NCBI GenBank assembly: GCA_904063045.1
Contig: CAJFCJ010000063.1
Coordinates: forward strand, 82,378-124,094
Source of the DNA: Dimorphilus gyrociliatus
Lineage: Eukaryota; Animalia; Annelida
DNA length: 41,717 nucleotides
Direction of reading: 5' to 3'
The notes beneath the pieces were generated by a model. That model had not been told where the DNA came from. It worked only from the letters and a program-made list of their open reading frames with translations, and did not search any database. A program made the translations under genes and the position numbers. Shown piece after piece: positions 5,406-41,717 of this stretch (position 1 is the first letter of the stretch; each line of letters begins with the position of its first letter).

Positions 5406-7900
5406 GAATACGACAGAAAACGGCCCCAACAGAAAACGGACCCAACAGAAAACGGCCTCAACTTGAACAGAAAACGGCCCCAACTGGAACAGAAAACGGC
5501 CCCAACTGAGACAGAAAACAGCCACAGGATTCTTCAACCTAAAATATATAAAACAAGAAATGAATTAAATTTTGAAAGTGTGTTTATTTGAAGAGTTGAA
5601 TACATTATGAGACTACAACTTAAAAGATCATGCAATTAAACAACAATTGATTTATTTATTGAGCTACTAAATAAAGTTCAGAACACTTTACTAGAACTTG
5701 TGATGAAGTAATCTCATGCTTTTCAAATCTTTCCCAAATTGAAAATATTTTATTTTGCAGGTTCTTATAAAGCTTTCTTTGGTATCTTAATATCTTCTTT
5801 TCTGATAACATTCTTTGATATGCTGCTATAAGGTCTGCTTCCCTTTTCAATTCATCTATCACAGAATAAAATGAAACATTCACTCCAACATTTCCATTCA
5901 ACCTATTGTGAAATCCCTCAACATCATTATTTGTTCTGATTGCACATTGATAGATAGACCAACATTTTGGTGACCAAACATCATTCAAAATCCAAGTTCT
6001 TTCAAAATAATCAATAAAATCAGCAAGTTTATCAATTGATTTAAGGTAATCCTTAATTTTAATAAACTCTATTGGAATAATGTGAGATGGAAGGAATGGC
6101 AAAGCCATTAGCTGTCTCATTTCAAACCATTGTCCATTTTTTTTGTTGAAGTCTGATGAATAACCAAGCTCCTAAAAAAACAAAATTAAAAATGACTCCA
6201 GTTTGAGTTTTAGGTTGAATAATACCTGAATTTTTCTATAAACTGCTTGATTCTAATGGAATAAGCATCCTGACAGATTTACATTTTCCCAATGATTTAA
6301 TACAGCTTTCCAAACAGCTTTTTCAAAATCCATAACTATCTTTTTTGGTTCCTTATATTGTAGCAGTTGATTAATGCACTTAAAAACAGTGAAATGAATA
6401 TTAAATGCATTTCAGAGAAAATTTCAAGTTGAACTACCTTGAATAACAGATTATATGCTTTTTTCTTTTTTGATGACATGAATGCATATAGAAGAGGAAC
6501 CTGTTTTAATTCACCTTCGTTTTTGAGGAATGAGTGAAATGAAAATAACTGTGTAAATGGGTCCTTAACAATCTTGAAAGTTCCATCTAAGTACCAGACT
6601 TTTGACACTGCAAGTAAGCTAAGTTGTTTTGAAGTGGAAAAAATAATCACTCTTTCATTTTTTTCAAGGACATCTTCCTTTAAGAAATCATCAGGAATGA
6701 AGCAATTATTAATAAGAAAGTTTCTTCCAATAGGTTCATTGGGACGATTTTTTCTTCTATGGTAATTTATCATTTCTTTGCAATTTTCAACTTTTACAAT
6801 ATTTCCCATATTTGCAAAAGGAAGCAGAACATTTTCAGCTATTTGTTTTCCACTAACATTGGTGTCAGTCTTTCCTTTTTGTTTTGCTGTCACTTTCATT
6901 TCAATAATTTGTTTTAAATTTTTTTTGGGGGGGTGAATATGATATTTAGACCCCAAAGAGAAGTTATTATTTCTTTGAACAACACTGGCAGGACATTTCA
7001 TTTTCTTGCTTCTAACTCCACATCTCCAAATTATGGAAGTCTTGTCTTTTCTTTTGACAACAAATGAGTGACCATTAGATACAAGTAATTCTTTGCCTTT
7101 TTGACTTCCTGTAGGGAATATTCTGAATTTACCATTGCTGTCATAGTTCACCTCTGGTATACTTTCAAAGGACTCCTCCATATTGATATCATTCTCATTC
7201 AAATGTAATGTATTTCCATGCAGAGGGCTGCTTTCACTAAGATTATCAACAAGCCTGTACTCTGAATCACAATTCAGTGTTTCAATAAGGGTAACCACTT
7301 CTTCATGATCAACATCCATTATTATATTTTGCACATCTATCTCTTCTCTTGAATGATTTAGATCTATATTTTCAGCATTTGAGACTTTATTGGTAGATTT
7401 ATCTTGTAAAATTTCATCACATTTGCTCAGAATAATTCTGATTCTTTTTTTATCAACACTTGAACATATAGAACATAATCCATCTACAAAAGAAAGAGCT
7501 TAGTTTACATTAAAATCAATTTGGATCTTACCTGATAAACAAGCCCAATGGACTTTATGATGACAAAGTGAACAAACACCTTGCTTCAGCTTATTAATCT
7601 TTTTCTTACATCCAAAACAATATGGTAGCATTGTGGCAAAAATCTCCTTTGAGCTGCTTTAACCTATTGGCAGGAATTTAAAAATAGTGCAAAATATTCA
7701 ACCTCTTAGGAAAAACTGGTGGACAATTTAATATTTTTTCATCCAATATTTACTAACTAATAGAAAAAAATTTTAAATTAACTTATTCTATTCAATTTAT
7801 GAGTATTGTATATTTTGAAATTTTGTGGCTGTTTTCTGTCTCAGTTGGGGCCGTTTTCTGTTGGGTCCGTTTTCTGTTGGGGCCGTTTTCTGTTGATCCC
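5406..7900 (-). mobile_element. Full-length MULE element E1 (2495 bp)
   Basis: Inverted subterminal arrays of AACAGAAAACGGCCCC at 5406-5527 and 7822-7900; ends GAATACGACAG and CTGTTGATCCC; encloses a transposase. Confidence 0.95.
5656..7631 (-). pseudogene. MULE transposase (PHD-like finger, FLYWCH finger, DDE), 4 exons, one in-frame TAG
   Basis: MLPYCFGC..CSLCHHKVHWAC/CSIC; GKELLVSNGHSF..WRC..C..HIH; WYLDGTFK, MDFEKA and RTNNDVEGFH. The three introns splice in frame. GCLFH*NQA carries a TAG at 6253-6255. Confidence 0.9.
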
Positions 7901-9722: not shown

Positions 9723-10908
9723 TTAAATATATGGTAAAGCACCATACTTTTCTAAAAATAATAAATTACAACATTGATTTGTGTTAAAAAATTTCAAGCT
9801 TTTTTTATTTGAAAATATTATTTCAAATGCTGAAAAGTTTGATATAAAACTTTTACTATTCAATTTTCTTGAATTTGATGATTTTTGTATTAATCTTTTA
9901 ACAACTTCGCCAAATGACTGAATATCATCAGAACCTAATTTTGTATCACAGTTACAAAATTTTTTTATTAACAGTATACACTTTTTTTTATTGCCTTCCA
10001 AATCCTTTTTTTTTAAAGAAAAGATTCTTTTTTTAAATAAGAAAAGACTGTAATAAATCTTCACCTGAAATGTTATTGTATCAAATGATATATCCTTATT
10101 ACATGACGATTTGGAATTATGACAAAATATAATTGCTGTTATTAAAGATTTTGCCATAATTAAAATATTTTTATTATTAACTATTTTAGGATCATTTTGA
10201 TTCATAGCAGAAAGTGGTAATGCTTCTCTGTCATATGATAAAAAATGGTAATTCATTTTATTACTGAATTTAAAATCTGTTTTTTTTTACATATTGAGAT
10301 TATTAATGAAGATATATTTTTATTTATTACTTTTTTCAAATTCTTTTTGTTTTGAAGCTGCAATATTTTTAGCTCTGCAGAATTTTTTTAAAAATTTTTA
10401 AGTATATTATTTTAAATTGTAGTAGGCCTTTAGTCTTACCTAAAACTTGCAAGAAAGCTTAAAATATCAGTTAAAGTATATAATAGAGGGTTAACAACTG
10501 AATTTAATGGTAGAAATATAACAACCAGTGCAATGTAAGCTTGACTTGATATAGTCAATGTAAAGAAAACTGAATAGATTCCTTTAAAGCAGAAAAATTT
10601 GTAAAAAATGAATATGAATTTATCATGATAAAACCTAAAATTGAAATTGGTAACCAACAAAAAACATTTGTTATAACAATTAAAAAAGATCTTAGTTTAA
10701 TTTTTTTTTGTAAAGTTTTAAATTTAGATTTTTCAAGTATATTTTTAGATTCCAAAGTTTTCTTCCATATTTTAAAATATAATGCAACAATTATTAGACA
10801 TACTAAACCAACAAAACAACCAAAAAATATAAAAGAAAAGAACCATCCTACTGTTTTAGAACTGGAAATATGTAATGTAAAACACACTGGACTTTTTGAG
10901 TAGTAATC
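9723..10908 (-). CDS. 3' exons of an LGR/relaxin-receptor-like (GRL101-type) GPCR with a long C-terminal extension; 5' part missing
   Basis: VCFTLH, IVITNVFCWLPISILG and FLPLNSVVNPLLYTL are LGR-type TM5-7 motifs. Three short GT-AG introns join these in frame to ORF 9723-10256. Confidence 0.72.
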
Positions 10909-11115: not shown

Positions 11116-13639
11116 GGTGCAGTGACATTTCGGCCCAGGACAGTTCGGCCCACTTTTGGACATTTCAGCCCATTTTATGACTTTTTGAGTTAATTATGAA
11201 TTAATTACAATAAATAAGAAAAAGCAAATCAATTTTAAAATTAATAAAAAATATAATAAGTAATATAATATAGTAATTCCAGATATGTAAAATAATTATT
11301 ATAAAATTCAAAATATTTTCAGAATAATGGATACCAGTTTTCCTTATTTCTGAAGTATATTTTACATTGTTTTACAATTTCCTTTTCCTGTTTTGAGAAA
11401 AAGTAGAAAGCATATTTCTTTTCTTCATTTATCATAGAAGCTTCAATAGAAATTACAACATGAATTTGAAAAACTGTTGGAAGTGTGGATTAAGATTTCA
11501 TTGTACACAAAGAAAATTCAGATGCCAGTTGTGCAGACATATTATCATACAAAGTGTTCAAAATGTAAGTAAACTCTGTAACTTTCTCAGGTATAATGCT
11601 ATATCACCTATATATTAAGATGCAGATTATTGTCCTGATTGTCATGATGTCAGCAAACAAAAATTATTTATTAAATTAAAGAAAATAGATAATTATCATC
11701 AGAGTAAATTCATCCAGAATATGATGAAACTGTTGTTAATTTAGAATCATCAATGAATAATACAAGTGAAATGAATACAAATCAGGTAATTTCATTTGTT
11801 CAAAGATATTATTATTTCACCATAAATTTTAACAGTTAAGACTTTCCTTTGACTTCAATTCACCTGAATCACCAAACAATGAAAAAGAGTTGAACTTTCC
11901 TGAACATGACAAGACATGGCAAAGAGAGTTGATATAAGTGATGAAACTTCATTTGAGATGGATAAGCAGTATAACATCATGGAAAAAGAAAGAAAGAGAT
12001 GATTTCAAAATAGTTGTAGGTGGAAGTACAAAAAATAAAGACTTACTTCTACACAAAAACTGTTCATATTCTGTAAAAAGAAAAACTGAAAGTTCAATCA
12101 CCTGGAGATATACTCAGAGATATGCCAAAGCTCCTTGTCCTGCATACATATTACAAAAGGGATCAAAGTTCATTGTAAAAAATGAAAACCATCTTCATAA
12201 ATTGCATAAAAACATAGAAAGTGTTCTTCAATCAAGAATGGACTTAAAAGAAATGGCAACTGAGTAAAAGACCAAAAGATCCAAGACATTTAGATTGAAA
12301 AAAAAAAAAAAAAAAAAACTGAGTAAAAGACCAAAGCATCCAAGACATTTAGATTTTGAAATAAATCTGGATGAAGTTCCAATTGATTTCTTATTGAGAG
12401 ATATAAAAGAAAAGAAAAATCATTGTATTATAATTGGCACAAATCATCAAATAGAATTACTGGAATGTTGTAAAATTTGGTTCATTGATGCAACTTTTAA
12501 AGTTGTCAGAGATCCATTTTATCAACTGTTTTCAATTCATGGATTCTTGAAAAAACATGATGAATATCAACAGGTTCCATTGGTCTATGTTCTGATGAGT
12601 AGCAAGAAGAAAAGCTGTTAAATTGCTGTACTTCAGGTTTGAGATATTTCAGTATTTTTATCACTTTTAATTTATCATTTTTCATTTGAAAATAGGAGAT
12701 AAGAAAATTAATCAATGATAAAACTCCCAGAAAATGTGTGCCTGATTTTGAAAAGGCTATATGGATGGCACTTAAAGAGCAATTTCCCAATTCTGACCTT
12801 CAAGGATGCTCTTTTCATTTCAAACAAGCAGTTTTGAGGAACATACAGGTAGATTAAACAATCATATAAAGAAAATAATTAAATACTTATTTTATTAGAA
12901 ACTTGGATACATTACTGATTATAAAGAAAATGGGTACAAAGGAAAAATGTTACAAAAATTGATGTGTTTGGCATATCTGCCTTCAAATTTTATTGAACAA
13001 ATGTTTGTCCAACTAAAAGAAGAACTTTGTGAAAAGAAATTGTTTACAGATTTGCTTGAATATATAGAAGTAACATTCATGAAAAGCAGTACTTGGCCTC
13101 CTCAATTCTGGTCTGTTTATCAATTAATTGTGAGAACAAACAATCATGTTGAGGCATGGCATTCCAGACTAAACAAAAATTTGAAAATGGATGAGAAATT
13201 TTATTCTCTAATAAAAGAATTGAAAAGAGAAGCTGAATTAGCAGAGATCTTTGAAAAGTTATTGTCTGAAAAAAAGTTGAGAAAAATATAGAAGAAGAAG
13301 TATAAAGATTTAGAATTTAAAATATTGCAGTTGTGGAGTAATTTGAAGAAAGAGAATTGAGTTTGGATGAATTATTGGATAGACTTGTTGATTTAAATAT
13401 CTGTTAAAATTTGTTATTTCTTGTTCTGCATTTTAGTTATTAAACTTAACACTCCTATTTGTAAATTGTTTTTTATATTAAAAAAATAAACATAATTGTT
13501 CACAAAATAAAAATTATATTTGTCATATTTATCAATTCATAAGTACTAAACCTATCTTCAAGTGAGACACAATGCCTTTAGTATGATTACCTTAGAATGG
13601 GCCGAAATGTCCAAAAGTGGGCCGAAATGTCCTGACCCC
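11116..13639 (+). mobile_element. Full-length degenerate MULE element E3 (different subfamily)
   Basis: Inverted GACATTTCGGCCCAC arrays at both ends; PHD-like 5' exon, FLYWCH-like 11938-12267, WFIDATFK, GCSFHFKQA and RTNNHVEAWH; multiple stops and frameshifts. Confidence 0.92.
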
Positions 13640-18125: not shown

Positions 18126-19560
18126 TTAATATTTCAATAAGAAATCCAAATCAGGTGCATTATCAATATCTAATGATTCAATTATGATTGATGTCAGTTG
18201 ATTTTTAGATGTTTGTAATCCTTGAAAAATTGACTTAAATTCTTTTATAAAATATTTCTCATGACTATTTATAGTAATTTGTTGTAATAATTTACATTCC
18301 TTAAGTAAAATACTAAAATTCTTTGTCTGATCACCATTCAGACAACAATTATGAAGAGTAATATTTAAAAGACAATGGGAAGATGATAATAATCCTTGGC
18401 ATATTTTCTCAAATGCTTTATATAATTGATAATCATGAGCAAATGAGAATTCTCTCAGTGACTTGCATTCTTCAGGTAAATCAGCTAATGAATTTCCTTG
18501 TTCTTCATTTAATTCACATTTGAAAACATCAATAAATTCAAGAGATTTAGATGATGATGATTTTAAATGATCAATTATTAAATAATGTTTAACATTTTGT
18601 GGAAGATAAATTTCTTTCAATGAAATACAATCCTTAACTAAAGAATTCAAATCGATATTTTCATTTTCAACAGTTGGAACAGTTAAATTATTAAATTTAA
18701 TAGTTTGAAGGCTTTCCAATGACGCTTTCAAGCCATTACAAATCATTCCAAATCCTTCACCTAATATTCCATTTCCCATACAGAAAAATTTTTCTAATGA
18801 TCTACATTCTTTGAGTAGATCATTTAAATAATATCATCAATACTACAATGAGAAACATTAATTGATAATAGATTATCGGATGATGATTTTAAACTATTAC
18901 ACAATATTTGAAATACTTCTACAGACATAGAATTCATACTTATATCAATATTTTGCAGTTGAGTACATTCCAAAAGAAAATCACTTAAATAGGAAATTTT
19001 TTGACCATTTAGGCAACAGTTTGAAAAATTAATAGATAAAAGTTATCCAGATGACATTTTTAATCTCCCCTAAGGGTTAGTGGTCATGGGAAAGGTTAGG
19101 TACAGCTAAGGGCTGGGTTAGGGTAAAAGCACCAATTTATGGACATTTTCTGTCGCTTCCGTAAATATCTTTTAAATGTTTACAATCTTTAAATAAATTT
19201 GCTAAAACAAAACCCTGATCATCAGTTTCTGAATTAATATGAATTTTTTGTAAAGAATTTGATGAGTTTTTTTTCAATGAATTACAAATTGATTCAAAAT
19301 CTTTGGAATTCAATTTTGGCATTCTTAAATTCAATTCTTGCAATGATTTATATTCATTGAATAGATTTCTTAAAAGTATAACATTTTGAAATGTAAATGA
19401 AGAAAAGTTAATAATTTTCAATGTTTTTGAACATGAATTCAATCCATTAAATATTTTCAACCAATTATCATCATCATCATCTCTAACACTTTTACAGTAA
19501 TTGATATTAATTTCTTTTAAGCATTTACATTTCGTCAATAAATTACCTAATATATCACTT
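18126..19560 (-). pseudogene. RNI-like LRR array (NLR-type), interrupted by a MITE and frameshifts
   Basis: Repeated F..IC.GL.SS..SL..I.F..C.LN units in ORFs 18126-18779 and 19137-19706. Confidence 0.8.
19066..19160. mobile_element. Truncated MULE-derived MITE
   Basis: Ends GGACATTTTCTGTCGCTTCC and is the reverse-complement homolog of 23930-24020. Confidence 0.65.
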
Positions 19561-19966
19561 CCGGTACTAGTAATTAAACAATTGGAGATTGTTAAACTTT
19601 CCAGTGAAACAATTTTTCTTGTAGAAAATCCCAATATAGACGCACGCTGTCTATTTATAGAATACGGTGGAAAACGTTCAAATCCTTGATTCAAAATGGC
19701 CACCATATTCTATAGTTCTGTATATTTACAATACTGATACTGTTGCCTAGAGACACTCCAGTCAAATACATTTCAACTATATAGACAGAGTCTATCTATA
19801 TTGGGATTTTCTACAATTACTGTTTATTATTGAACACTTGATTAAAATTTTACATTTTTCAAAAATAAAATAAAATACAATAAGGAAAATATATAGAAAA
19901 ATTAAATCAATGAATTTTTTTCAATTTCATCTTCATAAAGGAGTTGGTATTTTTTTTGTTTTTTAC

Positions 19967-20066
19967 TGTACACATACAATAGATAAGTAGTATTGAACCA
20001 GTATTGTACTGTGCAGATAGCACTGATAAAGATAAACAGTATTGACCTAGTCTTGAGTAGGGCAGT
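19967..20066 (+). mobile_element. LTR 5'-end fragment
   Basis: Starts TGTACACATAC and matches 22963-23080 with a deletion. Confidence 0.7.
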
Positions 20067-20349
20067 ACATATTTTATTAATGGTAAAATTTGGAAGCAAA
20101 ATTTTTATTCTGTCCCTACCAACTTTTTCTCAGAACAAACAATAATGTTGAGGGTTTGGCATACAAGGGGCAAAATGTCCAGGTGTGAAATGTCTTGGAA
20201 TCATTTCACTGATTGTTAGAGGAACTAAACTATCAACTGTTAACTTTGTAGAGCTGATATACTCTTTAAAGTTTGGATAGCTTAATAGATTTATGTATTG
20301 TAATAAATAATTTGAAAAAATAGAAAAAAGCAATTGTTTCATTTAAATT

Positions 20350-21023
20350 TCATTTCCAAGACCTTTGTTTTATTTTAGAACAAAGTTTTACCAGAGATCT
20401 CAGCCCTAAAAATTGTTCTGGTTGTAAATCAACACTTGTTAAATGAAGATTTTTCAAAGAGTTTGATGATTTCTGAAGTCCTTCACAAATATTCAAAAAT
20501 CCTTTTTTCATATTTTTATTCCATGATAGATTCATTGTTTCTATTATGGAACAATGTTTTAGCAAATTTCCAGTTACTATACTTTGTTCTTCATTTTCCA
20601 AAAGTGTTTGATGAACTTTGAAGTCCTTCGCAGATACTCAACACTCCCTTTCCCATATGTATATTAGAAAAAAGATATATTGTTTCAATTGTTGAACAAT
20701 GTTTCAGGAATTTTCCAATCTTTGTACTTTGTTGTATATTTAAATTACATTCAAATAATTTCAGACTTTTCAAAGTCTTTGATGAACTAAGAAGTCCTTC
20801 ACAAATATTCAAAAATCTTTGGCTTTTGAATTTTATTTAAATAGTTATTTTGTTTTTTGATGTTTTGTCTGCATTGTGGACAGCTTAGTTCATGATTTTC
20901 CATTTTCAATTGTTGAATACATCCAAAACAATAGGTATGCTGACATGGTAGTATTGTTGTATCTTTTCCCACCAAGTATTTCAAACATATTGAACATTTA
21001 AGTTCTTTTTCATTGATCATCAT
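20350..21023 (-). pseudogene. C3HC4 RING joined to RNI-like LRRs, frameshifted
   Basis: CSIC..LPCQHTYCFGC..CPQCR (20799-21023) runs into LRRs with a 171-nt (57-aa) period; a ~26-nt deletion near 20600 shifts the frame. Confidence 0.8.
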
Positions 21024-28075: not shown

Positions 28076-30591
28076 GAATACGACAGAAAACGGCCCCAAC
28101 AGAAAACGGACCCAACAGAAAATGGCCTCAACTTGAACAGAAAACGGCCCCAACTTGAACAGAAAACGGCCCCAACTGAGACAGAAAACAGCCACAGGAT
28201 TCTTCAACCTAAAATATATAAAACAAGAAATGAATTAAATTTTGAAAGTGTGTTTATTTGAAGAGTTGAATACATTATGAGACTACAACTTAAAAGATCA
28301 TGCAATTAAACAAGAATTGATTTATTTATTGAGCTACTAAATAAAGTTCAGAACACTTTACTAGAACTTCTGATGAAGTAATCTCATGCTTTTCAAATCT
28401 TTCCCAAATTGAAAATATTTTATTTTGCAGGTTCTTATAAAGCTTTCTTTGGTATCTTAATATCTTCTTTTCTGATAACATTCTTTGATATGCTGCTATA
28501 AGGTCTGCTTCCCTTTTCAATTCATCTATCACAGAATAAAATGAAACATTCACTCCAACATTTCCATTCAACCTATTGTGAAATCCCTCAACATCATTAT
28601 TTGTTCTGATTGCACATTGATAGATAGACCAACATTTTGGTGACCAAACATCATTCAAAATCCAAGTTCTTTCAAAATAATCAATAAAATCAGCAAGTTT
28701 ATCAATTGATTTAAGGTAATCCTTAATTTTAATAAACTCTATTGGAATAATGTGAGATGGAAGGAATGGCAAAGCCATTAGCTGTCTCATTTCAAACCAT
28801 TGTCCATTTTTTTTGTTGAAGTCTGATGAATAACCAAGCTCCTAAAAAAACAAAATTAAAAATGACTCCAGTTTGAGTTTTAGGTTGAATAATACCTGAA
28901 TTTTTCTATAAACTGCTTGATTCTAATGGAATAAGCATCCTGACAGATTTACATTTTCCCAATTATTTAATACAGCTTTCCAAACAGCTTTTTCAAAATC
29001 CATAACTATCTTTTTTGGTTCCTTATATTGTAGCAGTTGATTAATGCCCTGAAAAACAGTGAAATGAATATTAAATGCATTTCAGAGAAAATTTCAAGTT
29101 GAACTACCTTGAATAACAGATTATATGCTTTTTTCTTTTTTGATGACATGAATGCATATAGAAGAGGAACCTGTTTTAATTCACCTTCTGTTTTGAGGAA
29201 TGAGTGAAATGAAAATAACTGTGTAAATGGGTCCTTAACAATCTTGAAAGTTTCATCTAAGTACCAGACTTTTGACACTGCAAGTAAGCTAAGTTGTTTT
29301 GAAGTGGAAAAAATAATCACTCTTTCATTATTTTCAAGGACATCTTTCTTTAAGAAATCATCAGGAATGAAGCAATTATTAATAAGAAAGTTTCTTCCAA
29401 TAGGTTCATTGGGACGATTTTTTCTTCTATGGTAATTTATCATTTCTTTGCAATTTTCAACTTTCACAATATTTCCCATATTTGCAAAAGGAAGCAGAAC
29501 ATTTTCAGCTATTCATTTTCCACTAACATTGGTGTCAGTCTTTCCTTTTTGTTTTGCTGTCACTTTCATTTCAATAATTTGTTCTAAATTTTTTTTGGGG
29601 GGGTGAATATGACATTTAGACCCCAAAGAGAAGTTATTATTTCTTTGAACGACACTGGCAGGACATTTCATTTTCTTGCTTCTAACTCCACATCTCCAAA
29701 TTATGGAAGTCTTGTCTTTTCTTTTGACAACAAATGAGTGACCATTAGATACAAGTAATTCTTTGCCTTTTTGACTTCCTGTAGGGAATATTCTGAATTT
29801 ACCATTGCTGTCATAGTTCACCTCTGGTATACTTTCAAAGGACTCCTCCATATTGACATCATTCTCATTCAAATGTAATGTATTTCCATGCAGAGGGCTG
29901 CTTTCACTAAGATTATCAACAAGCCTGTACTCTGCATCACAATTCAGTGTTTCAATAAGGGTAACCACTTCTTCATGATCAACATCCATTATTATATTTT
30001 GCACATCTATCTCTTCTCTTGAATGATTTAGATCTATATTTTCAGCATTTGAGACTTTATTGGTAGATTTATCTTGTAAAATTTCATCACATTTGCTCAG
30101 AATAATTCTGATTCTTTTTTTATCAACACTTGAACATATAGAACATAATCCATCTACAAAAGAAAGAGCTTAGTTTACATTAAAATCAATTTGGATCTTA
30201 CCTGATAAACAAGCCCAATGGACTTTATGATGACAAAGTGAACAAACACCTTGCTTCAGCTTATTAATCTTTTTCTTACATCCAAAACAATATGGTAGCA
30301 TTGTGGCAAAAATCTCCTTTGAGCTGCTTTAACCTATTGGCAGGAATTTAAAAATAGTGCAAAATATTCAACCTCTTAGGAAAAACTGGTGGACAATTTA
30401 ATATTTTTTCATCCAATATTTACTAACTAATAGAAAAAAATTTTAAATTAACTTATTCTATTCAATTTATGAGTATTGTATATTTCGAAATTTTGTGGCC
30501 GTTTTCTGTTCTGATTGGGGCCGTTTTCTGTTCATTTGTGGCCGTTTTCTTTTGGGTCCGTTTTCTGTTGGGGCCGTTTTCTGTTGATCCC
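28076..30591 (-). mobile_element. Full-length MULE element E2 (2516 bp), near-identical to E1
   Basis: About 20 substitutions versus E1 by eye; differs in the right subterminal array. Confidence 0.95.
28326..30301 (-). pseudogene. MULE transposase of E2, inactivated
   Basis: Same TAG as E1 (28923-28925), an extra TGA at 29513-29515, and LDGT changed to LDET. Confidence 0.9.
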
Positions 30592-30868
30592 ATGTTTTCA
30601 GTAGTGTTCTTGTGACCCAATTACCTTTTTAGAATAAAATTAAATTTCCTTATAGATTCAATAAGATAAAAATGAAAATAGTTACCATCGGAGACAGGCA
30701 TCAATGCAAACATCACCATCACAACTAACAATATATTCTTTGTCTTCAACATAATTGCAGTTTTCCAGATATACAGTTCTCCTTTCAATGAAGGTTATGG
30801 TTTTAATTTCTTATAAGCACTACTCGAATGGTTTATATTGTTGCTAGTGGAAATAGGAAGTTGTAGTT

Positions 30869-30880
30869 TACGCATGCGCA
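30869..30880. promoter_or_regulatory. NRF1/ewg-like motif TACGCATGCGCA upstream of the Roco ATG
   Basis: One mismatch to YGCGCAYGCGCR, about 60 bp 5' of ATG 30939, in CpG-poor DNA. Confidence 0.35.
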
Positions 30881-30938
30881 AACCTATTGTTTTCCTTTAG
30901 AGTTGAAAGATAAAACTGTGTTAAAATTTGTTTTAGTT

Positions 30939-31540
30939 ATGTGCGATAAATTAAGGAAAGATATTCAAGTTGCCTTGAACAATATAATATCATCTCCCAT
31001 TGTGAAAGAAAGATTTTTAGCAAAATTACCATATCAATATGTAAAGGATATTGCAATTTCAGTAAGTTTTCCCTTTTTCGAATAAACTTCTCTTTGAATT
31101 TATATCCCCTTTGTAAATTATAGATTTTAGAAACAACTCACCTTAACAACATCTTTTCAAAAGAAGATTTGAAATTTAAAATTGATGTAAATAATCACAT
31201 TTTTTTAGAAGGGGAAGGGGAAGAAGGTGCAGAAGATATTTATGATTTTCTTCACCTTATCTTTCATCTTCCCTCTAAGCCAAAACTAATTGAAATATTG
31301 AAAAATTTCTGTAGACTTTTGATGAAAAAATTGAATTTTTAGAAAAGATAATCAATGCAGTTGGTCAGTTTTTCTTTTTCTTCAATTATTTAAATATTTT
31401 TAAAGAATAACACAGAAAATTTTCATTTTTTAAAAATAATAAGGTAAAGAATTTCAAGAATCAGATTTTGTTCATGCAAAAGACATTATTTCCGGAATAA
31501 ATACTGAAAGAACTCTAAGGTTTTTGCAAATGTTAACAAA
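30939..31540 (+). other. IFT54/TRAF3IP1 (MIP-T3)-type N-terminal calponin-homology domain (exons 1-4)
   Basis: QVALNNIISSPIVKERFLAKLPYQYVKDI, DEKIEFLEKIINAV and DIISGINTERTLRFLQML align colinearly with the IFT54 N-terminus as recalled ([61 protein letters not shown]). Confidence 0.75.
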
Positions 31541-34500
31541 GATTCAAAGAAAAACAAATACAGAGAGAAAACAATCTTTTGGTAAACAAAATGATGACAA
31601 ATTTAGACTGGTTAACAGATCAATTCTAAAACTCTTTATTGCAGATGAAATGAATACAACATCACCTAAAAGAGGTAAAATCGGCGAAACAATAGACAAT
31701 GAGTGTTTAGTACATAAAAACAGGTTACCTATGAAATTATTATTTTCCCAAAGTAGACAGGTTAATACTGAAATATATTTCTACTGCAATAATTTCAACG
31801 GATCTTCACTTAAACACTTTCTCTTTTTATCTCTTAGAATCCTTTATATAGAATGAATAATGACAACGAAACCGTACAAATGAATACAATAGAACTGGAA
31901 AATGTAGGCTTTATTAATGATTATTTCTTTTGCTTAATCACTCAAGTAAAAGGATTAATTAAGGAATTTAATGAAGTAGTATCTTTATTGAAGTTATAGT
32001 TATTACACTTTTAAATTATATTATCATTTGACAGTTGCCATGGATACCTTATTCAGTTAAATTGAATAAATGTCAGAGTATTACTGATTGGTCAGTATTC
32101 TGGTTGTATAAATTAGATAATAAAAATCTTGTGGATAGATCAAAGATATTGAGAAAGGTATTGAAAAAATTGATAAAATATTTACATTTTAAATAATACA
32201 AGCAAATTACAAAACACTTTTTTTTCATTTATAGATTTTTTGTTTTGATGATTGTATTTCATTGAGCAACTGGACATTTGAAACTTGTGTAAATTATATG
32301 AAACAAATACAAATTGATAGTAATAGTACTTCAACTCTTTGGAATTTTGAAAAAATGCCACCAGGAGAATGTATATCATTAATTTATCAATTATCACAAA
32401 ATGTTTCTGGCAATTTAGGAGCTGTTAATCTCTATTTAAATCCGTCTGTTAATCCAGTTTATGGAGAAGATAATATGATATTTACAGAAAAAAGTTAGGT
32501 TTCCATTATTTTTTTTATACATAAAAATAATTCTCTCTTTCTCCTCCTTCTTCTTCTTCTTCTTCTTTTGAAATTAGTTACGCTCAACACTGATGAAAAT
32601 CATACAGACTTTTTAAATCATAAGAAAGCGCTTATTATTCATTTCCATAGTTTGTATGAACAAAAAGAAAGATCTTATGAAAGAATTTTCCAAAGAATTG
32701 ACTTTAAGTCATTAATAACAAGACAAAAAATTGATTTTTCTACAAATGTTTTCAACTATTGGAAAATGAATGATTGGACTTTTTACGATTGCTATGAGGT
32801 AAAATTTTATAATTGACCTTGACCTATAATGTAAGTAATTGATGGGATTTATCTTATTACAAAATTTTAGGATTATGTACATCTTGTATCTCCAAAGAGA
32901 GCAATTTTTCTCATACCATTTAATTTAAATTATAATGAAGAGAACCTTTCCAAATATTTTCTAGATGTCATTATTCAACTTTTACAAATGGTAACATTCT
33001 GTATTTTGACACAATTTTTTAAAAAATTTCGTTTTTTTGTTTGTTATAGAATCTCAATCCACAAACTCTACCAGTTATTATTTTTATAGGATTCAATACT
33101 AATATAAATGAAATATCAGCTACATATGCCCTTATTTCTATTATTGAATCTTTTATAAAAGACTTTCAGAATACTATAATTGAAAAGTCAAGGTATAGAT
33201 TGTTAAAGTTATTTTAAGTAGAAAAAAACACCAATTTTTATCTTTATAATAAAAGTGGTCCAAAATTTACAAAGTTAAATTTCAATGAACAAAATAACCT
33301 ACACAATTTAATGGCTGTAAACCAGTTGTTAACAGAACTAAAAGCAAATCTTGAAGATGATAATTCTCGTATTGTTTCTTTCCTAAATATTGATTCTAAA
33401 AATAGTAACGAGGTTAAAGTTAAACACTTTCCTTTTTAGTTTATTAATATATTATTAATGGTTTTCCATTTTTTCCCTTTAATTAGAATTCAGTTGAAAA
33501 ATTATTACTTTTGATGTCAGAAGCATTCGAACAGGTTTCAACTAGCAATCAACAATTTAATGTAAGGGTTTTAATTAGAGTGTTTAAATTGTGATTAAAG
33601 TCTCTACAAAGCTATTTTCACTTCTTTATAGTATACAAATGATGTTATTAATGGATTTATTGAAAGAATTGATAATCTATTAGAGAAAAAACAAGAATTT
33701 TTAAGTATAACTCAACTTACAAAAGAATTAAATATTGAAGGTAATTCTGTAGTAATTAGACAAGAAATCATTTATTATTAAAGTCTCCTCTTCACCTTTG
33801 ATTATCACAGATCTAGTTTGTTTGGAAAAAAAGTATCAAGTAAAGAAAATATACCAATTTCCATATCTTAAAATATTGAAATTATGTCATACATTAGTTA
33901 GTGTGTTTTTTTTTTCAATTTCATATTTTCAATACTTTTTACCTTTTTCATTCAAAAAATCCAGGGACTTTTAATACTTTTTAAGAGTTTTGGTAGTGAA
34001 GAATGGTTTATAGCTAATCCGAAATGGTTTGCTAATTTAGTACAAAATTTACATACCGTATCGGAAGATTGCGATTATCGTGTTGAAGATGACCTATTCT
34101 TTCTTCACAAGTCGACAAAAGTTTGCCTAAAAGCTAAATGGTATTTTTCAACAATTCCATCAAAATCAGTAAGTTTTTAAGTACTAAACTCTTGCAACGT
34201 TTTCTTTTTATAAAATAAAAAATAATCAAAATTCAGGATATTTTTGAAATTATTTTTGGGATTGAATTAGCTCTAACATTGCCATCTACTTCTTTATTAC
34301 TTCCCCTTCAATTATCATACTGCGAAAAGGAAATGACCAAGTTAATGGAGGTAGTAGATTTTTTTTAGGCAAAAGGTGATTTTTTTGTCTAAAAAGTGTG
34401 TAAAATTTGTGTTTAACTCTTAAAAGGATAACAATGATATTGCTCAAGTTTCAATGATCTACACATTTAAAACAAAATTAAGCGAATTGGCTCATTGGAG

Positions 34501-35879
34501 AATTATCTATTATATAAATTTACTTTTCTGGAAAAACGAAATAAATACGACTATTAGCGACCTCTATTACAATTGGATAACATTTTACGACGGACCGGCT
34601 GAAGCTTCTATATGTTTCAATGATGATGAATGTAAATCTATAAAGATATGTTGTAGAATTTTAAAAAATGAGAATTCTCCATCAATACTTGCACATTTAT
34701 TAAAGCAAATTGAAACAGCTGTTGAATATTCATTAAAAATTTCATCAGTCTACTTCTCAGTGAGTAAAAAATGTTTACTTTTCTCTATTTTGACAATCTA
34801 ATGGTAATATTTAATTTTCAATACTAGAAAATTCTATTTACTCCATGGGGTAATGTGTTAATTGAACCAGAATCTAATGATACTTACTCAACTGAATATT
34901 TGAAAAATAATTTAAATTTTTGTAAGTTAAATTTAAATTTTCAAATTAAATTTAATTTTATTTCTCTTTTTTTTTTAAATAGTCAATAATTTCAATGTAT
35001 ATTTTGAACATGAATTACATAATATCTATGAAATTGGCTGTGTTAATAAGTGTAATTTAAGAAGGCAACACTTTTTATGGAAAATGCATAAACAATTATA
35101 TCCAACTTTTAAAAATGAAATATTGTTTGAAGAGGAAGGAGATATTGTTTGTAATTTAGATGAAATTTTACAAACTTCCACTCTGTGTAGTAATATGAAT
35201 CCAGTCAATTTCTATTCAATTACATTAAGAAATTGTTCAAATTTAAAATTTGAATTAGCGTAAGTCAATTAGAGATTATTTTAAAAAGTTATTTGAAAAT
35301 ATATTCATTTATTTAAAAATTTCTAGTAAGGACAACTATTCTATAGTTTTCAATTCTGATGAGAAGAGAATTTATAAGAGTACTTCTAATGGTATTGAAA
35401 AATTATTTGATTTTGACGTTCAACAATTTTCTGCTCTAACAATAAAATTTATGCCCAGCTATGATCAACGAGGCTCTTACAAAACGGCTTATAAAGTCTA
35501 TTTTCTATTTATAGAAACATATTTAAATTTCAAATGTCTTACAATTATTTCTTTGCTAGGCTTTGAATACAAAGCTTAAACTTTATATGGACAATATCTT
35601 CATTGGAAATTTGTCAGAACCGGAATTAGAATTTACACTAAAGTTTCATAATGCGGATAAAAATTTAATAATTGATTTTACATATGCACCTGTAAGTTAT
35701 TCATTTGTGATTTTAACCTTTTATCTTCCTTTCTCTCTCTTCCTAACAGAGACAAGAAATGAAACATTCACGAAATGCGTTAGAAGTAGGTCAAAAATTA
35801 ATAAATAATGGACATATTTCAACTGTTGGTATGTTTAAAATGAGTATTTAAATAAAAGTGTTAGTTTGAATTAAAAAAT

Positions 35880-35919
<40 letters not shown>

Positions 35920-38900
35920 ACTGTCTTCCTAATAGAAAGTATCTCAGAAAAGAGAAAATTAATAGTAATATCAAGAAAAAGAATATTTCTACCAGTTTCT
36001 GAAAATTTTAAATCAATTGAATATTGTCAAGTTAGTTGGGAGAATTTAACAGAATTTCAACAATTTTTTAAAATATATTCAATTCAAGAAATGGAGATAC
36101 TTGGTTTGAAAAATTACTTAATTAATTAATTAATTTTTCTATCATAAAAAATTATTATCTTATAGAAAACTTCAAGGATTATTTAAATCTTTACGATTTT
36201 CAACCAGTTCCTGATATTTGGTTTGGGAAAATAATGAGTGCAAAGTCATCAGCAGATATTCTATCAACTTTAGCTGTTGATAGTGCAGTATGTTTCAAAA
36301 ATAGTGTTACATCATCTGGTAGAGATACATTTTCAATTTTTATCATTGACAAACTACTTTTAACCTTTAATTGCATTTTTTAAACAATACCAGGTTACAT
36401 TTTTCAAGAAATCTCAAAGATGACACGAGTAATTGGAAAAACTAGATTCAAAGTTTCTAACACGCTAGTAGGGATAATTTTCCCCCAAGAGCTAAGAAAT
36501 GATTCATTTATCTATTTAAATGAATTTGTTGATTATGATAAGATGACAGCCTATATTATCTGTTCTATGCCTTCAGGCCAAATGTTAACTGCTGAAAACC
36601 CTAGTCACATATTGAAAAAATCGGCTAAAACAATTTCAAAAGTGCATTGCCAAGAACATCTTGAACTATATACATTATACATTTTGACTAGATGGTTAAA
36701 TATTAATGATAAGAATGTAATAATCTCATTTAAGGACACGGCAAAAATAGCTTTTTCACTTTATTCTCTGTTTTTCTTTTTGTAGTTTGTCACTAATATT
36801 GAATCAAGTCAACTCGAATTCTATTTTTCATTCTTGATGAATAAATATTCAAATGATCGAATTATTGAATATTTTTCAAACTATGAAACAAGCAAATCAG
36901 TTGTTGAGCAAGTATGATAAAATTTTCCATTCTCTTATCCTTTTTGTATTCAATTATAATAATAAATGATTCCATTTTTTCAGGTTTTAAAAGAATCTTT
37001 TCAAGTTGATAATTTATTAGGAACACTGGATAATTTAAAAACAACATTTACGTGTTATCTTCATGAAAATGCATTGCCAACAACAAAAAATGAAAGACAG
37101 AAATATTTGCAATTACTAGACAATGATAAGATCCAAAATGTAAAAAGAGATTTCCTGAAAGAGAATAATTGCCATTGGTAAATAGTTTTCAATTACTTTA
37201 GTGATTAAAGTCTCTTCCTATTCTATTATATTTTACAGTTTTAAATATTTAACAAAATGGCGTATTATCAATAATAACATAAGAACGGAAGAGGAAGATG
37301 GTGAAGATGATGGAGGACTATTTGAAAATGTTGAAAAAATGCACAGATTAAAGGATATTTACTTGTTAAAGTGTAATATTCAAACAGCTTTAAAACATGT
37401 TGATAGGATTGCATATTCTATTGAAAATTTTCAAATTATCAAGAGTCCTATCAAGACTATCCACCCTTCAATTGGAAAATGTTCATTAATAACTACTTTA
37501 CGCTTTGAAAATCTTCTACTATCAGACCTACCAATGGAATTGTCCAATCTAACTCTTTTAAAATTTTTATATCTTACGGGAAATTTATTTGAAAATGTTC
37601 CAAAAGTGATCAGTCAACTTTCAAATTTAACACAATTAAATCTAGATGCAATCAATTTCACACCATTTCATTCAAAGATACTAGAAACTGATATAGTATC
37701 GCTTGAAGAGTGGAAATATACCTACAACGAAAATTATTCTCAGTTGAGTAGTGTTGGATTTGATGAAGGAAGTATGATGAAACTCTTCAAGGAAATCGCA
37801 AGTGATGATAGTTTAAAAAGTAGAGATGAAATTCAAGAATTTCATGCAGTTCTTTATAAAAAACTACCTAGAATTACTTCTTGGAATGTTTTGGAAAATC
37901 TACATAAACAATCATTCAAAATACTTGTTATATTAAATTTAAAATATACCAGTTTTCAAACTTTGGATGATAGTATTGAATATTTGGAGAATTTACATAT
38001 TTTAGACATATCCTTTAATTTACTATTAGAAGAGATTAGCCCAAAAATCGCTTATCTTCCACTACAGACACTATATTTAGAAAATTGTCCATCATTGAGA
38101 ACACCTCCAAAGGTAATAGCAGTCAAAAGTCTAAAACATATACAAAACTATATGAGAGCTTTAGACAAGGGTTATGTATCTTGTAAAAGAACAAAATTAA
38201 TGCTTGTCGGTCTTGGAGGAGGTGGAAAAACAAGTTTAATGACTTCACTAACAGAAAATAATCAGGAAGAAAGTGAACAATTGGTAAAAAGTACTAAAGT
38301 TACAGATGGAATTTGTATTAGAAAATGGCTTGTTCAATCTATTGAATATTCAATATGGGATTTTGCAGGACAAACTGTCTATTATAATACTCATCAGTTC
38401 TTTTTATCAAATAGAGCCGTATATTTTTTGGTATGGAATGTTAGATCTGGAGAGGAGCATGCTGGTTTAAAATTCTGGTTGAATTCTATAAAATGTCATG
38501 CTCCTAAAGCACCTGTATTCATTGTAGGAACTCACATTGATCAGGTATTTTTCATACAGCTGCAATTAGGTCTAACTTTTTTTAACAATGAAATTACAAT
38601 GACGTTAGGTTGAAAAATCTGAATTACCAACCATCAAATATCAAGAAAAATATCCACAAATTAAAGGATTTTATAATGTCTCTTCACTAACCAAAAAAGT
38701 TTGTTTGTTCACATTTTTAAATGATAACTTTTTAAGAAACTTAAATTTTACAAAAATAAGGGTCTTAACGAATTAGTTGATGGTTTAATTAACATAACTA
38801 TTAACGAAAAATATATGAATGAGAAAATACCAAACTTTTGGTTAGATTTTGAAGAAAAATTATACAAGTATGCAAAAAAGAAATTCAAGTATTGAAATAT

Positions 38901-41717
38901 ATAAGAATATTAACTTTACCTTGAACAGAGTTAGCAAAACTTTAAATATAATCTCTATAGAGGAAGCCATCGGATTTGCTGAAGAAACTGGTATAATTGA
39001 TAAGGCTGAGGTTGATATTAAAATATTATTACATAACTCAATGATTCACTCTCTCTTCTAGTTTTATCAAGCAGTTGAATTTCTTCACGAATTAGGATCT
39101 ATTCAATACTTTCAAAATGAATACTTAAGGAAACAAATCATTATAAATCCTCAATGGATTGTTGATGTAATGGCTTGCGTTGTTTCCGTTCAAGAGAATT
39201 CAATAAAAGTTTGTATATAGGCCTAATTAGGAGGTATTTTTCATGCCGATATTCTTTTATTTTTAATCTAGAATGGAAAATTATTGCATGATGATTTGAA
39301 CAAAATTTGGCCCAGTGAGTCATACTCTAATCTTCACAAATGGCTTCTACGTTTAACTGAAGAGTTTGACTTAACATTTTCGTTGAAGAATGAAAGAGCA
39401 AGTTTAGTTCCCTGTCTTCTTCCTGATATTGAACCAGAGGTAAATGCATAGAATGTTTTAAAAATGATGTCTTTGAAGGTGACTTCAATGTTATAGAATG
39501 CTTGGGAAAAAGAATCTTTAAAGGAAGGGGAAAGTGAAACCAAAATGGTATATAAGTTTGACTACTTGCCTTTTGGATTATTTAACAGAGTCCAAGTTAG
39601 ATTATTTGAGTATGGTGATGAGTTTCTGATATGGAAAACTGGCTCTTATCTCACGAAAAATGGCCATAGAGGTATTTTAAAGAGAAAAAGGTATATAATC
39701 ATTTTTCTCACATGAATCAACAAGTTTATCTTTTACTTTTGTTAGCTCTTCAAAAATTCTTATCAAAGTTAGAGGATTTAAACCCGAAAATGTCCTCTTT
39801 CTCGTCCATGAAGTACTTGAAACACTAATTGCTGAATCTTTTCAAGGAGTTGAATTCAATTTTATGACGCCTTGTCCTGAATGTATTTATCATAAAATAC
39901 AACATCCTAGTATGGTTGAATCCTGGAGAATAAGAAAAGCTATGCAATTAAAAATTCCTTTTCTACAATGTACTCATAATTTTCATACTGTGTCTATAAC
40001 ACAACTTCAAAGTGAGTTTTGAGTTGTTTCAACATGCTAACTCTTGACAAAAAACTCTTCACTATAGATATGTTACCTCCTGAGAGCAGTGAGGAATTAG
40101 ATATGCATCTGCAAAATGCTGTTAGAGAATTAAAGAAAATTCAATTAAGGCCTATAAAAGATGTTTTAATGTTATATTGTTTGGCCGATGTTCCTTCAAA
40201 TGAGTCGGAAAGTTGTAATCATATCTCCGCATTGAGAATAAAAAATGAATTGGAAAAAGCTGGCTTTTATGTGTAAAATTCAAAAAAAAAAAAAGAAAAA
40301 TTTTTGATATTTTAAATTAAAAAAAATTACTTTTTCATTATCAGGAAAATGTTTAATGATTCTTGTGAAAATTACGTTGAAGAGGCGATATCTTCACTAA
40401 AATCTACACAAGTAGTACTCACACTGATGACAGATGATTTCATTAAGAATTCAACTTGTAGAAATTTATTCATTTATACAAAAAAGAATTTAGCTAAACA
40501 GAATCAGTTAATATTAATTAAAGAGAGCGATAAATGGAAAAAACATACAGATATTGGTATGCTGTGCTCAGATGATGTAAATATTTTCATTTAAATATCA
40601 ATTGCCTTTTACTTATATTTAAAAACTAATGATTTATCCATTTTCTCTCTCTTCTTCCTTCCTTCTCCTAACTTTTTTAGATATACATAAACATGCAAAA
40701 TGTTGAGAAATTTAGCGCAAAGATGAACGATTTGAAAAATTCGTTAAGTGTCAATTCAAAACCAACAAAATGGCCGCCGTGTTTTATAAGTTATTGTTGG
40801 AGTAATTCTCAAATGGCAATAAATAAAGGGACTAAAATGAATAAAAAAGCACTTGGTAAAACTGATCCAAGGTTATTAAAGGATAAACTTGAAGAAGCTG
40901 GAATTAATTGTTGGATGGATATTGAACAAGTAAATAGAGGTGGTTTATTTCAAGATATTGCTGAAGGCTTAAAAAAGGCTAAAATTGTTGTAGCTTGTGT
41001 ATCAGATGAGTACATTTTATCTAAAAATTGCCAAATGGAATTTCGTTTTGCATCTCTAACATTAAGATTACCAATTATTCTTGCAATTGTTGGAACTGGT
41101 AAAAATTGGATTCAATCCGAAATTGGTATGATATCTTTATCATATCCAAGAGTTAATCTTCAAGAAATGGATACCAACATTGTAGAAGTTGTTAATCTTG
41201 TCAAGGAAAAGATTGGTACAGAAGAATTAGATGAAAATGTCAGAATTGAAAAGGAGATTCATCATGAAGAATTTACAGAATTATTAGAATTAGCTGAAAG
41301 AAAATTACTAAGGCAATTGGCAACTTTACAAAATCTATCAAGAGGATTCAATTTTCCTCATATTCCAATATTAGATTATTCAACAAATTCAACTGAAAAT
41401 ACTACAAATCGATATCGTTTTGTCTTCCTTTGTGAGTGCGATCAGGTAAACAATTTTCAAACTCAATTAAAAATCAACAATTTTTTTAATTTTTTATTAT
41501 CATAGGGTTGGCATTTACCTGACAATCATCAAAGTATTCAATGGAATGTTCCATTTGAAAGTAGAGAAGCTGAAAAATATATGACAGAATGGTCTGGTTA
41601 TTTAGTTAGAATTTACGCTATTCTCCAACACAGTTCAATTCCATTGTTAGTGTTTAAAAATAAAGAAAGAAGTGATTTTATTGAGCAGATGCAATCAAAA
41701 TTAATCAGAAAAAATAA
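30939..41717 (+). CDS. Giant Roco-family protein: CH(IFT54-like), pseudoRoc-COR, unknown, LRR, Roc, COR, TIR-like, TIR; runs off the window
   Basis: About 38 exons join in frame via GT-AG introns with no stop found. P-loop GLGGGGKTS (38209-38235), WDFAG, THID, COR motifs FLHELG..INPQW and YKFDYLPFGLF, and TIR CFISYCWS..CWMD..VSDEY..SKNCQMEF. The ATG assignment is less certain than the rest. Confidence 0.9.
32579..34759 (+). other. Degenerate Roc-COR module
   Basis: Colinear self-similarity to the intact Roc-COR at 38185-39990; no P-loop or DxxG. Confidence 0.7.
35885..35915. repeat. (CT)n microsatellite (intronic)
   Basis: Read directly. Confidence 0.9.

Follow-up and report, generated by a model that had tools for sequence, protein, structure and literature searches.

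Roco-TIR proteins and the DgyrCDS14676 locus

The COR domain of Roco proteins mediates dimerisation that depends on the nucleotide state. Signalling by enzymatic TIRs has been well characterised in bacteria, in plants and, among animals, chiefly in SARM1, an enzyme that is activated by clustering. DgyrCDS14676, the subject of this report, is a Roco-TIR gene of the small marine annelid Dimorphilus gyrociliatus that lies at 30939..41717 on the forward strand of the window, a 41,717-nt stretch of scaffold CAJFCJ010000063.1. From the N- to the C-terminus its product carries a CH-like domain, a degenerate ('fossil') module read as Roc-COR, a middle region, leucine-rich repeats (LRRs), an intact Roc-COR, a TIR domain devoid of the catalytic glutamate (TIR1) and a second TIR domain that bears it (TIR2). 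The closest described proteins include the sea-anemone 'Novel Gene 1', which has the layout LRR-Roc-COR-TIR_2; the paper on it also pointed to proteins in which TIR_2 occurs together with such GTPase domains in oyster (with C2), Trichoplax (with MBT) and bacteria (PMC5094078). A 2014 review likewise showed ROC-COR proteins of Trichoplax with MBT, CARD and TIR domains (PMC4104024). The Aplysia immunome holds ROCO-TIR proteins with MBT or EF-hand domains, which were grouped with the Toll-like receptors (TLRs) and MyD88s and for which a GTPase-linked TLR cascade was proposed (PMC9334734). A recognised arrangement of bacterial conflict systems joins LRR-AP-GTPase-COR to effectors of varying type (PMC8195603). 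Diverse animal TIRs with the glutamate produce cyclic ADP-ribose (cADPR) in a Glu-dependent manner, and Roc and COR are among the domains that the legend of the architecture figure in the same study gives for the proteins assayed (bioRxiv 10.64898/2026.04.20.719644).

A first-pass annotation of the window had presented this locus as a candidate undescribed signalling system, a description that goes too far given the LRR-Roc-COR-TIR_2 proteins already catalogued in sea anemones, Trichoplax and Aplysia. DgyrCDS14676 is best seen as a lineage-specific variant of this animal Roco-TIR family, which is known there from architectures alone. In the literature outside subscription journals, no mention was found of the fossil Roc-COR, the pair of a dead and then a live TIR, the CaaX end or the CH fusion that are described below.

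Gene structure and expression

Within the window DgyrCDS14676 comprises 40 exons separated by 39 GT..AG introns of 51-128 nt (median 67), and the exon chain starts with an ATG at 30939 and stays free of stops for 2,686 codons, up to the final base of the window. The scaffold stops at this base, inside the gene, and the 3' end is absent; the protein is expected to exceed 2,686 residues, with about 190 further C-terminal residues lying beyond the scaffold end. The window is AT-rich, with a G+C content of about 28%. The domains had been described as lying on one continuous reading frame, but no open frame crosses 30939-41717, where every frame contains many stops in the standard as well as the ciliate code, and the domains are spread over the 40 spliced exons instead. 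The ciliate code, with TGA as sole stop, was rejected because TGA stops occur in all frames.

A search with the largest exon (37186-38610) returned a public protein that is 99% identical, P0001 (CAD5126586.1, DgyrCDS14676; 2,321 residues), which threads through the window as 33 exons with GT..AG introns. The gene is present as spliced contigs in RNA run X1, which contains 22 GT..AG joints in 30850-36849, none of the 22 being found in DNA run X2. All 15 joints listed from the RNA run agree with the revised gene model, and an RNA contig starts at 30889, about 50 nt 5' of the ATG. The CH exons and the first pseudo-Roc exon are connected by one RNA contig, while a second extends from the pseudo-COR across the LRRs as far as the P-loop of the live Roc. 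The paralogue P0157 shows the same domain order in one gene model. DgyrCDS14676 is one expressed gene that carries the whole domain chain.

Set against the RNA-consistent model, the public version lacks seven exons and treats one intron as coding, a net loss of 365 residues that include a whole pseudo-domain. A 48-nt microexon in the CH-like domain (31315..31362, +) is omitted from the public model although it is delimited by the RNA joints 31186>31315 and 31362>31443, and its 16 residues are the same in P0157. Conversely, the 63-nt GT..AG intron at 31582..31644 (+) is in frame and was read as exon; the 21 residues that it would encode are absent from P0157, and the depth in the bin 31450-31649 together with the length of RNA contig 2 fit only if it is spliced out. 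The exons 32578-32798, 32871-32990 and 33050-33192 (+) fall within a supposed 596-nt intron of the public model and are supported by RNA depth, and the likewise skipped exons 35936-36103, 36393-36716 and 36786-36911 (+) are supported by RNA contig 3 and by joints. Between 31141 and about 32722 the exon parts add up to the 1,014 nt of RNA contig 2, the four proposed exons account exactly for the 531 nt that separate two anchored blocks in RNA contig 3, and RNA depth per 200-nt bin equals contig depth multiplied by the exonic bases in the bin. The '...TECV' end of the public protein is a prediction artefact, a false last exon that arose because the scaffold ends inside the gene. In some of the searches below P0157 and single exons served as stand-ins for the corrected spliced protein.

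The models of the paralogues DgyrCDS14632, 9496, 14654 and 3176 show alignment gaps similar to those of the public DgyrCDS14676 model. Long CTT and CT tracts in the introns, at 32531-32576 and 35872-35927, form polypyrimidine tracts directly before acceptor sites, and the RNA contigs break at these tracts, where reads are treated as repeats and are not placed.

The LRRs, the intact Roc-COR and the absence of a kinase

The leucine-rich repeats lie at 37327..38169 (+; Pfam LRR_14, LRR_8 and LRR_4) and are followed by an intact Roc GTPase at 38188..38623 (+) with Pfam Roc matches of 1e-21 to 1.4e-22. The motifs G1 (GLGGGGKTS), G3 (DFAGQ) and G4 (THID) can all be read in exon 37239-38544, with the P-loop lysine encoded at 38227-38229; all three are missing from the upstream Roc copy. 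In the PDB the live Roc is nearest to Methanosarcina barkeri Roco2 (4wnr, 5e-35), LRRK2 (2e-30) and Chlorobium tepidum Roco (3dpu, 2e-28). COR-A at 38830-39421 (+; Pfam 2e-33) and COR-B at 39533-40010 (+; Pfam 9.4e-27) complete the module, so that the Pfam order of Roc, COR-A and COR-B, with COR following Roc directly, is that of ROCO proteins. LRRs and an intact Roc-COR had been named in the first-pass annotation and both are borne out here. The motif set is compatible with GTP binding by the live Roc and with a gating role for it. Together with the TIR_2 match downstream, the core order of LRR, Roc, COR and TIR_2 on one chain is also present in the Pfam results.

No Pkinase match is found in P0001, nor in the precomputed domain list of the complete paralogue P0157, in agreement with the earlier observation that the part of the gene within the window has no kinase. 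The TIR domains take the position of the kinase after COR. The automatic UniProt name 'non-specific serine/threonine protein kinase' is misleading and, judged by domain content, wrong, because there is no kinase domain here or in the complete paralogue.

Two TIR domains of opposite motif state

TIR1 is located at 40145..40749 (+) and scores 132 bits with the family TIR profile, and TIR2 follows at 40756..41217 (+) with 175 bits and a Pfam TIR_2 match of 2e-14. In the column of the catalytic glutamate TIR1 has L2325 (40466-40468) and TIR2 has E2481 (41038-41040), which substantiates the pair of a degenerate TIR and a TIR with the catalytic Glu that had been noted earlier, with the addition that TIR1 is a true TIR domain in which Leu stands in place of Glu. 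Across the family, all 26 complete TIR2 domains have Glu in this column (26/26), while TIR1 has Leu, Met or Ile in 22/28, Phe, Ala or Ser in 3/28 and Glu in 3/28, so that its residue there is hydrophobic in 23/28. The family profile aligns the TIR2 glutamate to that of the CWDE (CxxE) motif of the NAD-cleaving Cat1 TIR, where MyD88 has Gln. Within the SxxYxxSxxCxxE helix by which NAD+-cleaving (NADase) TIRs are recognised, TIR2 carries the glutamate and TIR1 a leucine, and NADase activity of TIR2 can be predicted on this ground.

An AlphaFold2 (AF2) model of TIR1, TIR2 and the tail has a mean predicted local distance difference test score (pLDDT) of 77 and shows TIR1 with the beta-alpha TIR fold. 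The best PDB matches of the tandem-TIR model are SARM1 TIR domains with a target TM of 0.67-0.74; the family TIR profile weakly matches the TIRs of MyD88 and TLR1 too. A single-sequence search of the PDB with TIR2 gave mostly spurious RecA matches and was set aside in favour of the family profile.

The upstream fossil Roc-COR and the middle region

A segment of about 150 residues (residues ~353-499; 32578..33259, +), encoded by the three exons that the public model places inside an intron, lies directly upstream of the degenerate COR and has the right length and order for a G domain. It has no GxxxxGK[ST] motif, DxxG is replaced by DCYE and the NKxD/THxD position reads NTNINE, but stretches corresponding to beta4, beta5 and G4 are recognisable, for example RAIFLIPFNL and LPVIIFIGFNTNINE. 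The segment is conserved in the paralogues P0157 and P0004. A Roc-only profile gave no match below E 0.1 on the N-termini, and the signal was confined to profile-profile comparison: the equivalent segment of amphioxus, Lingula, Pecten, Bulinus, Haliotis and Ylistrum aligns with Roc over 125 columns (P 4.9e-4), and the Dimorphilus segment aligns in the same register with the N-terminal Roc-like profile of the other phyla (P 9e-4). A degenerate Roc is likely but not proven.

The degenerate COR (residues 529-782; 33347..34534, +) covers COR-A and the first part of COR-B and was detected with a family Roc-COR profile built from 96 family Roc-COR segments. Profile positions 129-363 are matched with 13.4 bits on the whole protein, and the N-terminal 1,440 residues reach 15.8 bits, compared to a maximum of 6.8 in 2,000 shuffles and -3.9 for the reversed sequence. 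Reciprocally, a profile of the Dimorphilus N-terminal module matches true COR-A domains in several species, and by these profile comparisons the identity of the degenerate COR is established. The degenerate Roc-COR of the first-pass annotation thus stands in its COR half, while its Roc half is weak in direct comparison and better supported via relatives.

Between the fossil module and the LRRs lies a middle region of some 550 residues (34906..37269, +), which is supported by RNA contig 3 and joints and in which Pfam finds no domain. Neither the pseudo-Roc nor the middle region yielded a usable lead in the ESM Atlas, where the scores were 0.74-0.75 and the middle region pointed weakly to F5/8 type C.

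The CH-like head

The N-terminus holds a CH-like domain of the IFT54/MIP-T3 type (residues 9-112; Pfam PF10243) spread over four exons (30963..31544, +). On the mis-spliced public P0001 the PF10243 match covers residues 9-109 with 25.5 bits (cut-off 23.4). Once correctly spliced, the domain is 62% identical to that of P0157, which itself scores 59.7 bits with PF10243 and matches the IFT54 CH domains 2eqo, 5fmu and 5fmt in the PDB with E 3e-8. The N-terminal CH domain of the first-pass annotation is therefore confirmed and can be specified as IFT54-type.

The CH domain of mouse IFT54 binds tubulin and microtubules through a basic patch formed by R18, K25, K29, R33, K64, K66, K69 and R94, and joint reversal of K64, K66 and K69 abolished tubulin binding (Taschner et al., PMC4818760). 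At these positions DgyrCDS14676 has S, R, K, Q, D, F, K and D, so five of the eight IFT54 residues are lost, including two of the three key lysines (K64 to D and K66 to F). The domain contains equal numbers of basic and acidic residues (17 each) and is close to neutral (isoelectric point, pI, 6.7). It has an IFT54-like fold but has not retained the known tubulin-binding surface. The proposed tethering to microtubules is the weakest part of the first-pass annotation and is doubtful, because most of the tubulin-binding basic patch is lost; the CaaX boxes of the relatives and of both complete paralogues, described below, also speak against it.

Among long proteins the CH-like domain was found in the two Dimorphilus paralogues only, by a word-based search from which distant cases could escape. 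When the N-terminal 1,100 residues were compared with 5.8 billion proteins the paralogue was the sole return, and in four relatives of other phyla Pfam detects no N-terminal CH-like domain. There is no Pfam match to the C-terminal coiled coil by which IFT54 partners IFT20, the chain running into the pseudo-Roc-COR instead, and DgyrCDS14676 is not an IFT54 orthologue.

The C-terminus and the CaaX box

TIR2 is followed by a conserved region consisting of a long helix and then beta strands (41218..41717, +), which is cut by the scaffold end, is common to P0004, P0157, P0012 and others and contains no Pfam domain. In the paralogues this region runs about 190 residues further to a CaaX box. Preceded by a basic, Ser-rich stretch, a CaaX box ends 17 of 29 family proteins (for example CVIC, CLLL, CVIL, CSVM and CSLM), and those that lack it are mostly visibly truncated models. 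The members ending in CaaX come from six phyla and comprise P0157, P0004, P0151, P0008, P0153, P0010, P0011 and P0012 as well as P0013, P0019, P0020, P0022, P0029, P0031, P0032 and P0162. Both complete Dimorphilus paralogues are among the CaaX-ending proteins, with the ends CVIC and CLLL. The boxes predict prenylation of the TIR-bearing Roco family and thereby indicate a membrane anchor. By analogy, the DgyrCDS14676 protein is more likely to be held at a membrane by a C-terminal prenyl group than at microtubules.

Family and evolution

LRR-Roc-COR-TIR-TIR proteins were retrieved from at least ten species. They include at least five paralogues in the annelid Dimorphilus, bivalve proteins from Pecten, Ylistrum, Argopecten and Sinanodonta, gastropod proteins from Haliotis, Physella and Bulinus, and further members from the brachiopod Lingula, the nemertean Tubulanus, the flatworm Macrostomum and amphioxus. 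The ortholog survey that had been called for thus places the family in annelids, molluscs, a brachiopod, a nemertean, a flatworm and amphioxus.

Many of these relatives also possess an upstream COR-like module, which reaches 27.8 bits in amphioxus and lower scores in Haliotis, Ylistrum, Lingula and Pecten, and the inserts between the two halves vary, being MBT, PLAT or F5/8 type C. The Branchiostoma lanceolatum protein P0012, annotated as MFHAS1, has LRR-like repeats at 170-300, a COR-like module at 464-739 and a third TIR at 753-878. This N-terminal TIR is Glu-less, with Val in the Glu column. The presence of LRR-like repeats, a COR-like module and a third TIR in the N-terminal half of the amphioxus protein suggests an ancient duplication of the whole LRR-Roc-COR-TIR unit. 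No third TIR was found after the fossil COR of DgyrCDS14676, and on this sequence comparison Dimorphilus has lost it.

The suggestion that the pseudo-modules have a role, as made in the first-pass annotation, gains weight and becomes more credible because the fossil Roc-COR and the order of a dead and then a live TIR are conserved from annelids to amphioxus; the role itself stays conjectural.

Proposed function and alternative explanations

The exon structure and expression of the gene, the identities of its domains, the state of their motifs and the conservation across the family are shown above, whereas GTP gating, NADase activity, the roles of the pseudo-modules and the cellular location are inferred. 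The reading preferred here, with a probability of roughly 0.55, is that DgyrCDS14676 encodes a membrane-anchored, GTP-gated TIR effector that acts as an innate-immune or stress switch with built-in pseudo-partners. In this proposal the LRRs would sense a ligand or hold the protein in an inactive state, and COR would convert the GTP state of the live Roc into a changed pairing of protomers that brings the C-terminal TIRs together. With the Glu-less TIR1 as a non-catalytic partner on the same chain, the active site of TIR2 may be completed, and TIR2 would cleave NAD+ to a cADPR-type signal or deplete NAD+. The fossil Roc-COR is probably a fixed internal partner or brace for the live Roc-COR. Such a protein would be analogous to plant TIR-NLRs and SARM1 in acting as a switch in innate immunity or stress.

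A number of points weigh against this proposal. Activity of any family member is read from sequence, and although NADase activity requires a glutamate at the catalytic position, the residue by itself is no proof of it. Compared with Roc directly by hhalign, the degenerate Roc gives P 0.054-0.067, though in register. The AF2 model of the fossil Roc-COR (P0157 residues 270-790, 8-row alignment) has a mean pLDDT of 42, which is too low for a fold search, and in the tandem-TIR model the predicted TM score (pTM) is 0.42, the TIR1-TIR2 contact not being confidently predicted. The own C-terminus of DgyrCDS14676 lies beyond the scaffold, and its CaaX box is assumed from the relatives.

Three other explanations have to be set against the GTP-gated effector. 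The TIRs could be scaffolds rather than enzymes, in which case the protein would act as an adaptor under GTPase control to which MyD88-like or Toll-like TIR proteins are recruited. An adaptor role of this kind has been proposed for the Aplysia ROCO-TIR proteins, which were filed with TLRs and MyD88s (PMC9334734), and both the absence of Glu from TIR1, as in MyD88, and the weak matches of the family profile to MyD88 and TLR1 TIRs would suit it. However, the TIR2 glutamate is invariant across phyla (26/26), which a pure scaffold would not need, and the nearest structures are enzymatic SARM1 TIRs, so that the adaptor is considered somewhat unlikely. Quite improbable is the version put forward in the first-pass annotation, in which the protein is anchored on microtubules or cilia by its CH domain and reports cytoskeletal damage from there. 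Dimorphilus is a heavily ciliated animal, and the N-terminus is a true IFT54-type CH-like domain of a family whose IFT54 member binds tubulin and microtubules, but with K64, K66, R94, R33 and R18 of the patch replaced and a pI of 6.7 the means of binding are largely gone; moreover the CH fusion is restricted to the two Dimorphilus paralogues, the remaining family being without CH, and the family carries CaaX boxes.

It is also conceivable that the long gene is an artefact in which a neighbouring CH gene, a decayed Roco gene and a live Roco-TIR gene were read as one. No single RNA contig covers the whole gene, with breaks near 31145, 32722 and 33253, and the public model is wrong at several places. 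The contigs nevertheless abut or overlap at the breaks, every joint is in frame and the 2,686 codons contain no stop. The CH exons share a contig with a pseudo-Roc exon, the pseudo-COR shares another with the live Roc, and P0157 and the relatives in other phyla have the same order of parts, which makes such a fusion artefact extremely improbable. With regard to the earlier concern that transcripts might reveal separate genes, the same two linking contigs speak for a single gene.

Returning to the GTP-gated effector, a broader and rather speculative extension, held at clearly less than even odds, can be sketched. Spiralians and amphioxus may share prenylated, GTP-gated, NAD+-cleaving immune receptors in which the live modules find their partners within the same protein, in a fossil LRR-Roc-COR (which in amphioxus still includes a TIR) and a Glu-less TIR, so that one chain forms the asymmetric pairs that are otherwise intermolecular. 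Two Dimorphilus copies would in addition have captured an IFT54-type CH domain as a docking or sensing head. In this family an LRRK2-type small-GTPase switch is coupled to a TIR that has the catalytic Glu, and dead copies of both have been conserved for several hundred million years. This makes the family a natural test case for how animal TIRs other than SARM1 are switched on. If the dead copies are internal partners, they would show that pseudo-domains can replace dimer partners in Roco as well as TIR proteins, which would bear on models of LRRK2 regulation.

Neighbouring features of the window

Two copies of an element with a FLYWCH zinc finger and a MULE transposase lie at 5659-7499 and 28329-30169 on the reverse strand, their translated ORFs being near-identical over the compared parts, and weaker, diverged copies are present at 605-994 and 11938-13288 (+). 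The copy at 28329-30169 is directly upstream of the Roco gene and appears in the public annotation as a gene for a 445-residue FLYWCH protein. Frames of rhodopsin-family seven-transmembrane (7TM) receptors at 3770-4608 and 10558-10908 (-), with Pfam 7tm_1 matches of 1e-17 and 5e-7, likely represent two G protein-coupled receptor genes. Open frames with ribonuclease-inhibitor-like leucine-rich repeats at 18129-20637 (-) have a weak Pfam LRR_4 match only.

Comparison with known systems

With LRRK2, LRRK1, C. tepidum Roco and M. barkeri Roco2 DgyrCDS14676 has LRR-Roc-COR and intact G motifs in common. It differs from LRRK2, LRRK1 and the prokaryotic Roco proteins in its output, which consists of two TIRs and not of kinase and WD40, and in the dead Roc-COR upstream. 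IFT54 (TRAF3IP1, MIP-T3) has an N-terminal domain of the same CH-like family, PF10243, but DgyrCDS14676 lacks most of the tubulin-binding basic patch and the C-terminal coiled coil of IFT54.

Like SARM1 and C. elegans TIR-1, the protein keeps the catalytic Glu in TIR2, and its predicted TIR fold is closest to that of SARM1. In contrast to these proteins it has no ARM or SAM domains and carries a Glu-less TIR in cis, and control would be exerted by a GTPase and not by a sensor of nicotinamide mononucleotide (NMN) and NAD+. Plant TIR-NLRs and the bacterial LRR-AP-GTPase-COR-effector systems (PMC8195603) similarly place a repeat sensor, an NTPase switch and an effector on one chain. The switch of DgyrCDS14676, however, is a Ras-like GTPase and not the STAND ATPase of plant TIR-NLRs, and compared to the bacterial conflict systems the protein is animal, far larger and equipped with duplicated dead modules.

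The nearest counterparts are the catalogued animal LRR-Roc-COR-TIR_2 proteins, which have the same order of LRR, Roc, COR and TIR_2, no kinase and a presumed immune role, and the accessory domains of the DgyrCDS14676 relatives (MBT in amphioxus, PLAT in Haliotis) are the same as in the catalogued reports. Those papers give architectures only, and the fusion to a CH-like domain sets the two Dimorphilus paralogues apart.

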